Shown: positions 52,986 through 54,765, numbered from the stretch's first letter. The stretch: DNA of 64,000 nucleotides from Pocillopora damicornis (GCF_003704095.1 NW_020844403.1:124001-188000), one strand, 5' to 3'. Notes: a model not told the origin generated them from the letters alone. Numbers and translations are program-made.

Positions 52986-54765
52986 ATGGGAGGAGTTCCA
53001 AACACGAGCGGTCTCATTGCCAAGGGCATTCTTTGGTGTCTGCTATTTTTCCTGGGATATATGGAAGTAAAAGGAACGGAATATATTGCTCCAAGTTTAG
53101 AATGCAGGATGAGCTTTAACCTTACTGAGCTGGAGAACAAAACAGTCTACGAATATCACAGCTACACGAACAGCTCTAAGCCAGGGACCATTTTGGCCCT
53201 CCTCAGCAAGCGCGCCAACAGCTCGTCGAAAGAAGAGATTGCATCTATGTATAATATCTCTACGGGATGCTTGGCATACTTGGAATTCACACTGCCCGAG
53301 GTCGCTCTGTTTCTGCTAAATACATCTCAGTTTAAAGATATCACATTCGAGGATGTTGTCCAAGGTGTGTTTGTCTTTGAGGTGGAGACTGTTTTACGAA
53401 GAATTTTTGCCTGGCAAAAAGCCTTCAACACTTTTGGAGTCAAAGGGAATGAAACGCTGGAAGAACTAGCCTCGATACGGCAAGTGAGCTTGGATACAAC
53501 ACCCATTCTGAAGCTGTTCTTGCTTTTCGTAAATAACGACAACGTTGAGTATCTTTCTGGGGTTTTGCAAATCAGTTTGTCAGCTTTTGAATTTCTCAAC
53601 CGGACCGCGGAAGAACTCGGGACCATCCTGGCTGTGCCTGATACAGATGAAGTGAGACACTACTCCTTTCTTCGCTTGATAAAGATTGCGGTGCTAGGTC
53701 AAGATTATGTCAGTGGGCTTCAAATGAGAATCCATATGGTGCGGCACTCGTTGGATGTTTGGGTGAGCAAAATTAAGGATGACCTGGATAATATGACAAC
53801 TGTATTGGATCTGGTCCGTTCCAAAATTCCAATGAACTTACATTACCTAACTGCATTTCTGATAGACGTGACCCCGAGAGACTTGGATCTCTTAAAAATA
53901 ACCTTACAAGAGTTTGCAGAATTGTTGAATAAGACAGTTATGAAGTTTTACGATTACAAATTGTATCCACAACTTGTAACGTTCATCGTGAAGACGAGGA
54001 AAAACGTTTTTGAACTTAATAGAGAGGCGATGGAGGAGGCTAAACGTGAGGTACGGAAAATATTGATGTCGTACAATGTCACCGCTGAAGTCCTGATTGA
54101 GTTTTTCAATTTGACTGAGATCATCTTTCATGACCTGAGTCCCCTCAGAATTGAGGTCCTCTGCGCAAGATACACTTTAGTACGTTATGCAAACAATTTA
54201 AATATGACCCTGGCTGAAGTCGCAGACAAACTCAATAAAACCGAAGCTGAATTGTCCTATAATCTAACCGTTCAAGAATTTCACGTGGTGATTCGCAAAC
54301 TGCTGATAATTCGCACGTTTGAAGCCATGAGTCAGATGTTGGGCGTAAGCCAGCACTTTTTGGTGAATTCTCTTGACATTCAAGTCCCGATTTCGTATCT
54401 GTCCATGTGTCAACTTGATTCCTTCCTTACTAAGACTAGACAATCTGTGCTGGACTTAAATGAAGTACTAAGCAACAAGACCTTGGCGTTTGTGTGCCAG
54501 ATCAATGCCGTGCACGTTACCACCGTCTACAAATTCACAATTGAGCGATTTATCATCGAAATTCTGCATCTCGATATTCGCTACTTTTTTGCTCTCAATG
54601 GCTTAACCTACTCGTCAGACAACTTGGAAATAGTCCGAAAATATCATTTCTTTGAATTGGAGCACTTGTTTCAGTTACGCGGCGATGATCCCATGTACAG
54701 CTTTGTTATATTCCGTCACTCTCTGGTTTGGATCATCAAGCATATCATCTATCTTAAGAAGACAG
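52986..54765 (+). CDS. First coding exon: signal peptide + ~560-aa unassigned, Leu-rich, N-glycosylation-rich repeat domain
   Basis: Long ORF with ATG start and hydrophobic N-terminus. An acceptor-like ttttttgcgaag| lies just upstream at 52964. The phase-1 donor ACAG|gtaaca splices in frame to the first DINEC EGF exon. Confidence 0.85.

Follow-up and report, generated by a model that had tools for sequence, protein, structure and literature searches.

MUC4 and the cnidarian mucin4-like proteins have a core in common that comprises the domains NIDO, AMOP and VWD (the last with a GDPH motif), followed by C8-3_MUC4, EGF domains, a single transmembrane segment and a short tail. In vertebrate MUC4 this core is preceded by a glycan-rich N-terminal region distal to NIDO, a disordered, O-glycosylated repeat rich in Pro, Thr and Ser (PTS) that is encoded by one large exon after the leader. 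Published additions to the core in cnidarians are TSP1, CUB, ZP, FN3 or SEA domains (PMC4890752, PMC9080433, PMC3748352): a coral skeletal "mucin4-like" skeletal organic matrix protein (SOMP) has TSP1 repeats at its N-terminus (PMC4890752), anemone mucin4-like proteins carry CUB, ZP or FN3 (PMC9080433), and a skeletal "Mucin-4" is described in S. pistillata and Acropora (PMC7115838, PMC4890752). The window analyzed here, a stretch of 64,000 nucleotides from the coral Pocillopora damicornis (GCF_003704095.1 NW_020844403.1:124001-188000), holds the 5' part of a gene of this type in which a module of about 560 residues, encoded by a single exon at 52986-54765 on the plus strand, stands at the N-terminus of the predicted protein. 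The module is an internal tandem repeat rich in N-glycosylation sequons, and a description of it was not found in the literature on cnidarian mucin4-like proteins; it represents a domain family, new and of narrow distribution, on a type of protein that is already known. A preliminary description of the exon, made from its sequence alone, had proposed a glycosylated module of repeats resembling helix-turn-helix (HTH) and LysM domains in place of the mucin stalk, an interpretation that the analysis below partly supports.

The module exon and its connection to the EGF exons

Positions 52986-54776 (plus strand) form an unbroken open reading frame (ORF) of 596 codons, surrounded by eukaryotic sequence of 36-40% GC. 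The ORF, the Pfam matches and the RNA joints agree with the preliminary description that a single 1.8-kb exon encodes a signal peptide and approximately 560 residues at the head of an EGF-NIDO-AMOP-VWD protein.

52965-54765, plus strand: large exon, comprising 21 nt of leader and the coding sequence 52986-54765 (593 codons and one base, phase 1)
52986-53075, plus strand: putative signal peptide, approximately residues 1-30, with a hydrophobic core after a basic residue, conserved in homologs and modelled as one helix

The exon ends at 54765 in phase 1, with one extra base before the donor (G|gtaaca), and the acceptor at 55437 (...aacag|AC) completes an Asp codon to give D-I-N-E-C, the start of a calcium-binding EGF (cbEGF) domain. 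This junction, which the preliminary description had suggested looking for in RNA data, is present as the exact joint 54765|55437 (GT..AG) in polyA RNA contigs of four runs from three studies (X1 and X2 from study P1, X5 from P2, and X9 from P3). Four further EGF joints (55556|56487, 56615|57065, 57196|57765 and 57923|58617), all GT..AG, are likewise found in RNA contigs, which give cbEGF exon lengths of 120, 129, 132 and 159 nt in phase 1-1. One contig of run X5 has a length of 6823 nt and extends beyond the compared stretch.

Repeat architecture of the module

Self-alignment of a profile of 21 homologs yields a top score of 40.6, compared with 24.7 +/- 2.7 in column shuffles, and a sum of 411 for the top 12 alignments, compared with 238 +/- 11; the offsets of 11 of these 12 lie at 90-107 residues, and autocorrelation peaks occur at offsets of approximately 60, 100, 150, 205, 260 and 310. 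The module was divided for hhalign at residues 31-99, 100-204, 205-303, 304-405, 406-496 and 497-593 (M0 to M5), using a more diverse alignment to which relatives of 38, 32 and 23% identity had been added. Neighboring units of about 100 residues align in register: M1 with M2 over 95 columns (E 7.9e-6, probability 84%), M0 with the second half of M1 over 49 columns (E 6.3e-6, 85%), M2 with M3 over 63 columns (E 2.6e-4, 43%), M3 with M4 over 32 columns (E 1.4e-4, 52%), and M4 with M5, also in register, over 23 columns (E 3.8e-3, 9%). Scores above every reversed-sequence control were obtained for 11 of the 15 module pairs (Mann-Whitney p 5.5e-6). The internal tandem repeat is real and comprises five and a half copies of a unit of about 100 residues, as follows.

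53076-53282, plus strand: M0, a half module (residues 31-99) in which C40 and C95 are conserved; aligned by hhalign to the second half of M1
53283-53597, plus strand: module M1, residues 100-204, motifs T102 and T157; hhalign M1/M2 and motif scores
53598-53894, plus strand: module M2, residues 205-303, motif T207; hhalign M2/M3 and motif scores
53895-54200, plus strand: module M3, residues 304-405, motifs T306 and T366; among the units, the second half of M3 gives the best superposition on XRE HTH
54201-54473, plus strand: module M4, residues 406-496, motifs T408, T419 and T428; no other stretch of the domain is as conserved
54474-54764, plus strand: module M5, residues 497-593, the most degenerate; low model confidence at 482-516 and 558-575

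The preliminary description had proposed ten degenerate copies of a 12-residue motif as the repeat. Statistical support for an internal repeat was indeed obtained, but the true unit is the ~100-residue module, of which the 12-residue motif is a sub-element occurring two or three times. Among the ten copies, T157, T207, T306, T366 and T408 are strongly significant (leave-one-out scores of 15.5-25.7 versus a shuffle maximum of 14.6, used as a whole-sequence threshold), those at 81 and 102 are borderline, and those at 185, 444 and 499 are weak, lying just 2.5-3.3 standard deviations over the per-position background; the motif scan also returned a borderline site, T428, that had been missed. Five core units from six species can be aligned over approximately 40 columns, which correspond to a succession of three short helices with N-x-T/S or h-S/T before each. 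Repeat statistics and the structural model described below together place the module in the alpha-helical tandem repeat class, as a supported repeat of predicted all-alpha units.

Glycosylation signals and predicted fold

The mature module contains 16 N-x-S/T sequons, a four-fold enrichment over the 4.0 +/- 1.8 found in shuffled sequences, none of which (0 of 2000) reaches 16. At least 12 of the sequons stand at the same column in at least 18 of the 21 homologs, and the anemone relative, at 24% identity, has 21. These counts, together with six cysteines (four of them conserved), bear out the earlier estimate of about 15 sequons, several at the repeat turn, and few cysteines. Serine, threonine and proline together make up 16-18% of the module, which therefore has no PTS mucin region; the earlier view that a mucin stalk is absent from the N-terminus holds, with a folded helical structure predicted instead.

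The AlphaFold2 (AF2) model built on the 21-sequence alignment has a mean predicted local distance difference test score (pLDDT) of 72 and a predicted template modelling score (pTM) of 0.50, and consists of short helices only, with no strand of three or more residues and with two unreliable stretches; the model from the single sequence (pLDDT 34) was of no use. In the alignment-based model, the Thr or Ser of 10 of the 16 sequons lies exactly one residue before a predicted helix start (1.1 expected, P ~1e-8), and 14 of the 16 sequons lie within three residues of one. The sequence S/T-x-x-E is a classical helix capping box, a pattern reproduced here by a Glu three residues after the sequon Thr or Ser. 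In this medium-confidence model the sequon Thr or Ser doubles as the helix N-cap, so that a glycan, if added, would sit at nearly every helix start. As a side observation, the unit profile weakly matches a segment of the HIV envelope protein gp120 (N-K-T-L-x-E-V-A-E-K-L, PDB 9nvv_b), a glycoprotein helix that starts right after a sequon and a small independent example of the coincidence of sequon and N-cap.

Downstream domains and the complete protein

The exons that follow the module were searched singly, and the whole protein was judged from a natural full-length ortholog. Five EGF_CA domains, NIDO, AMOP and VWD were all identified above Pfam cut-offs in the exons of the window (NIDO and AMOP on 61568-62239, VWD from 63470 onwards).

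55437-55556, plus strand: cbEGF exon 1; RNA joints, EGF_CA 37.6 bits, AG/GT flanks
56487-56615, plus strand: cbEGF exon 2; RNA joints, splice flanks, Pfam EGF_CA
57065-57196, plus strand: cbEGF exon 3; RNA joints, splice flanks, Pfam EGF_CA
57765-57923, plus strand: cbEGF exon 4; RNA joints, splice flanks, Pfam EGF_CA
58617-58741, plus strand: cbEGF exon 5; RNA joint, Pfam, tblastn; the 3' coordinate is the end of the compared stretch
60441-60617, plus strand: first part of the NIDO exon; tblastn with residues 856-913 of ortholog P0060, 81% identity
61655-62233, plus strand: exon with the end of NIDO and the start of AMOP; Pfam NIDO 32.3 bits, AMOP 26.6 bits; tblastn
62857-63033, plus strand: exon with the end of AMOP; tblastn with P0060 residues 1149-1208, 68% identity
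63512-64000, plus strand: VWD exon opening with GDPH; Pfam VWD 37.5 bits; the gene continues past the window

The next 10 kb of the contig contain further cbEGF exons and a clear transmembrane segment, the helix of which lies about 9.4 kb past the window. Two transcript-derived full-length orthologs, P0060 (2302 amino acids) and P0062 (2293 amino acids), were reached through the cluster of a 53%-identical homolog. In P0060 the module (residues 1-597, with no family) is followed by five cbEGF domains, NIDO (853-1029), VWD (1232-1405, opening with GDPH at residue 1234), C8-3_MUC4 (48.3 bits), further EGFs, SEA (2028-2090, with a G-S-V-I motif), another EGF, a transmembrane helix (2178-2198) and a tail of about 100 residues; EGF_CA stretches number 13 in all. 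Both GDPH and the transmembrane segment are visible in the genome of the window as well. By its domain order, the gene is predicted to encode a type-I membrane glycoprotein of the MUC4 type, with the 560-residue module as its membrane-distal tip.

The GDPH at the start of VWD and the SEA sequence G-S-V-(L/I)-A-D-V-D-L (63512 onwards in the window; 7563-7871 at locus L006; residues 1234 and 2074 of P0060) are similar to the sites at which MUC4/MUC2 and SEA-domain mucins cleave themselves, so that processing may divide the protein into subunits held together non-covalently.

Distribution and conservation

A word-index search returned 30 homologs at 50-98% identity, all of them unnamed ORF-called exons of approximately 600 residues, and a HMMER profile scan of 1.84 billion representatives gave 16 matches; those of full length represent this exon at lower identity, and the others are fragments. 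One relative at 32% identity is SRR10189781; the most distant one, at 24% identity (E 6e-18), comes from the anemone Actinostola sp. and is annotated as "hypothetical protein QZH41_019154, partial". No further relatives were obtained by word-index searches with the anemone protein or with the diversified alignment, and the total stands at about 35 among billions of predicted proteins. Wherever the locus of a relative was examined, in coral-like genomes and in Actinostola, the same exon stands upstream of EGF exons. Besides the window, this holds at four loci (L001, L002, L007 and L003), with VWD also present at L002 and a NIDO/MUC4-type gene model following in L003. Stony corals have this arrangement, and so does at least one sea anemone; it therefore arose before the two lineages parted and is no biomineralization novelty.

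In Actinostola (L003; GCA_033675265.1, JAUJYZ010001480.1, positions 10001-13577), NCBI divides the gene into two models. The ORF there ends at the same K-T-G|gtaac phase-1 donor, with a cbEGF exon beyond a simple-repeat intron, which indicates that the annotation merely splits the gene. The first model covers the module, is labelled a partial hypothetical protein and ends in a spurious 4-residue exon; the second covers the EGF-NIDO-MUC4 part. The intron between the two consists of simple repeat, approximately 1.3 kb long, that codes for Ser/Pro and Leu.

Within the genome of the window the module is single-copy. Exon-level NIDO matches number 36, at roughly 15 loci by our own count of distinct places, and just the window locus has the module. 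The NIDO loci (on contigs C1708, C1150, C3979, C3735, C4007, C294, C231, C3698 and C3622) include clusters at 44-72 kb of C1150 and 879-922 kb of C1708, the family being expanded and tandemly arrayed in this coral. Identity between orthologs is 53% in the module, 57% in the cbEGFs, and 68-69% in NIDO-AMOP and VWD-C8; by this comparison the module is constrained. Residues ~395-520 are far more conserved than the rest of the module and include long invariant runs. Synteny is retained among L001, L002 and L007. Two related genomes, at L001 (389-1111) and L007 (2153-2926, minus strand), have a gene with a WSC domain upstream on the other strand, which suggests conserved synteny.

Relationship to HTH, LysM and designed repeats

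In agreement with the earlier remark that no named family was recognized for the module, neither the exon nor its 21-member profile gave an above-threshold match in Pfam (E up to 10), NCBIfam or PDB sequences, the pooled unit profile found no family in the sequence libraries, and ESM Atlas returned no feature match. Fold searches likewise gave nothing significant, either with Foldseek against PDB (best E 0.2), where the weak neighbors are solenoids (among them TAL effectors, a designed toroid and the repeat domain of Sca2), or with VIA, where XRE-type HTH chains fill the top of the list at residues 338-395 and 397-446.

The proposed resemblance to HTH and LysM fared differently for the two families. 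Among 14 members, Sigma70_r4, HTH_3, HTH_11, HTH_8 and KORA recur below the Pfam thresholds: Sigma70_r4 in 5 of 14 at E<1 (best E 9.7e-4; 18.7 bits on the exon, below the cut-off of 24.1) and HTH_3 in 3 of 14 (best E 2.1e-3, below its curated cut-off), while a six-frame genome scan gave zero HTH_3 matches. HTH_3 is also carried by 8 of the 10 ESM Atlas clusters nearest to the model of ortholog P0024, a poor one (pLDDT 0.42). In hhalign comparisons with a reference profile of seven Pfam-verified XRE-clan domains of E. coli K-12, the pooled unit reaches a probability of 42% (E 2.7e-4, 27 columns) and the best single slice 26%, compared with 75% for a true homolog with equally small alignments and at most 0.2% for reversed controls. 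The matches span 12-30 columns, always helix 2-turn-helix 3 and never the whole five-helix domain, so that the resemblance is confined to a core of about 25 residues. Units of the module further differ from XRE and sigma-70 region 4 domains in being tandem and, by prediction, extracellular, with sequons in the turns and no DNA-binding context.

LysM is a beta-alpha-alpha-beta fold of about 44 residues, and its likeness to the module is merely a loose T-L-x-x-I-A-like helix start. With no Pfam match at E<=1 in the 14 members, no strand in the model and no LysM chain in the fold lists, LysM identity is ruled out as far as the tools can tell, and the glycan binding through LysM-like units that had been suggested loses its basis. 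Horizontal transfer of a bacterial HTH array, an idea raised by the intronless 1.8-kb exon, was also rejected, there being no prokaryotic homolog among the 1.84 billion representatives.

The sole real PDB sequence match of the unit profile is 8VD6 (five identical weak matches of 19 residues, 13.4 bits each), a de novo designed helical repeat protein or "CAP repeat" made with ProteinGenerator (PMC12339374). It resembles the module as an idealized repeat of capped-helix hairpins, and differs from it in being artificial and without ancestry, in its 33-residue period and in its lack of sequons. A match to a designed protein argues that the motif represents a generic capping-box and hairpin grammar rather than kinship, and we conclude from these comparisons that the motif probably looks HTH-like because both share the grammar of capped hairpins.

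Leader exons and transcription within introns

Two leader exons were placed upstream of the large exon.

50734-50823, plus strand: main non-coding 5' leader exon, from loose ends of X9 and X2 contigs; the 5' coordinate is provisional
49781-49981, plus strand: candidate alternative leader exon, non-coding, represented by a loose end of 201 nt in a single X1 contig, with an apparent GC donor and the same acceptor at 52965

The RNA contigs start at about 52964 with a leader that maps 2.1 kb upstream and ends at 50823. Intron 1 (50824-52964, GT..AG) contains the run of N at 52642-52741. The main leader contains a stop codon in frame and lacks an upstream ATG, and the start codon is therefore the ATG at 52986. 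The alternative leader may mark a first exon or promoter used in place of the main one, or else the contig may be a chimera. Elsewhere in the gene, RNA contig depth across the four runs is very high (about 220 to 1900) within introns at 55540-56140 (between cbEGF exons 1 and 2) and 58340-58540, with many partial fits at 90-95% identity and many loose ends; these places look like a transcribed dispersed repeat or transposon fragment, outside the gene proper.

Comparison with MUC4 and interpretation of the module

The window exons and P0060 together display the features by which a protein is recognized as MUC4-type (the order NIDO-AMOP-VWD, C8-3, EGFs, a single transmembrane segment and GDPH), with the exception of the O-glycosylated PTS tandem repeat, in place of which the low S+T+P content and the helical model point to a folded repeat with signals for N- rather than O-glycosylation. 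Like vertebrate MUC4, the coral gene has one large repeat-bearing exon after the leader and a glycan-rich region distal to NIDO, predicted in the coral protein from its sequons; in contrast to MUC4, it adds five cbEGFs before NIDO and SEA near the membrane. Judged by these features, the protein has a MUC4-like core and is not a mucin in the strict sense.

The reading that we favor, and consider on balance probable, is that the module is a folded, N-glycan-bearing replacement for the stalk of a MUC4-type glycoprotein. The exon would form the membrane-distal end of a single-copy type-I transmembrane glycoprotein of hexacorals, with the predicted order signal peptide, helical module, five cbEGFs, NIDO, AMOP, VWD (GDPH), C8-3_MUC4, EGFs, SEA, EGF, transmembrane segment and short tail. 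Its half module and five ~100-residue modules would fold as an all-alpha tandem repeat, each module containing two or three helix-turn-helix hairpins of the form [N-x-T]-L-x-E-h-A-x-x-h-[N-x-T/S], and the coincidence of sequon and N-cap would plant an N-glycan at almost every helix start. A rigid scaffold coated in this way could take over the role that the O-glycosylated PTS stalk has in vertebrate MUC4, presumably as a hydrated, protease-shielded spacer that also displays glycans at the epithelial cell surface, and the ectodomain may be shed through the GDPH and SEA self-cleavage motifs. Several points weigh against this proposal: the pTM of 0.50 and the two unreliable stretches leave a "rigid rod" a guess; residues 395-520, being strongly conserved, could form a surface for specific binding and not a passive scaffold; and the five cbEGFs between the module and NIDO loosen the positional analogy with the MUC4 repeat exon.

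The conservation of residues ~395-520, with their long invariant runs, also speaks for the main rival explanation. By this account the module would be an alpha-solenoid that binds a specific ligand, whether protein, matrix component or microbe; the conserved C-terminal half would be its active surface, and the glycans would just solubilize and protect it. Helical tandem repeats are commonly binding scaffolds, and the weak Foldseek neighbors of the module are solenoids too; binding of this kind is a possibility to be taken seriously, though short of probable. It is unlikely that the units are true HTH or LysM relatives co-opted outside the cell, where they would bind chitin, peptidoglycan or another polyanion. 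In the HTH version, equally doubtful, the hairpins would descend from tri-helical HTH domains that were moved outside the cell and tandemly multiplied, with N-glycans in the turns. Such descent would be consistent with the recurrence of Sigma70_r4 and HTH_3, the XRE chains at the top of the VIA list, the HTH_3-bearing Atlas clusters, and the margin of the XRE-profile match over reversed controls. However, no curated cut-off is reached, the matches are confined to helix 2-turn-helix 3 and score below the true-homolog control, HTH_3 is absent from the genome scan, the Atlas model is poor and not independent of the sequence motif, and a designed protein is the one real PDB sequence match; for LysM, Pfam match, beta strand and fold match are all missing. 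We know of no extracellular glycosylated HTH array described in an animal; if the descent were true, the array might still attach at the coral surface to a polyanion, for example extracellular DNA, sulfated glycans or polymers on the surface of microbes.

The annotation of the anemone counterpart as a separate "hypothetical protein, partial" raises the alternative that the ORF is a gene of its own, or else a removed pro-region, and so lies outside the mature MUC4-like protein; release of the distal part at the GDPH site after synthesis would be compatible with the latter. The separate gene is largely refuted at the RNA level, as four RNA runs splice the exon in frame to the EGF exons, the ORFs of P0060 and P0062 are continuous, and the anemone ORF ends at the same phase-1 donor ahead of a cbEGF exon. 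This alternative as a whole is very improbable, and the folded, N-glycan-bearing stalk replacement remains the preferred reading.

Implications

The contact of corals and anemones with microbes, symbionts and sediment is controlled by a layer of surface glycoproteins, the membrane-tethered components of which are barely described. Cnidarian genomes commonly encode extracellular domains that are restricted to a lineage and belong to no family, so that the occurrence of the module is no major surprise; with about 35 sequences and no Pfam entry, the family is a candidate for definition as a new domain. In the model the sequon is coupled to the helix N-cap, an arrangement that would constitute a simple, testable design rule for the display of glycans on helical repeats. 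The MUC4 scaffold (NIDO-AMOP-VWD-EGF-transmembrane segment) can evidently carry a predicted folded, N-glycan-studded helical repeat instead of a disordered O-glycan stalk, which would represent a different structural answer to the same problem.
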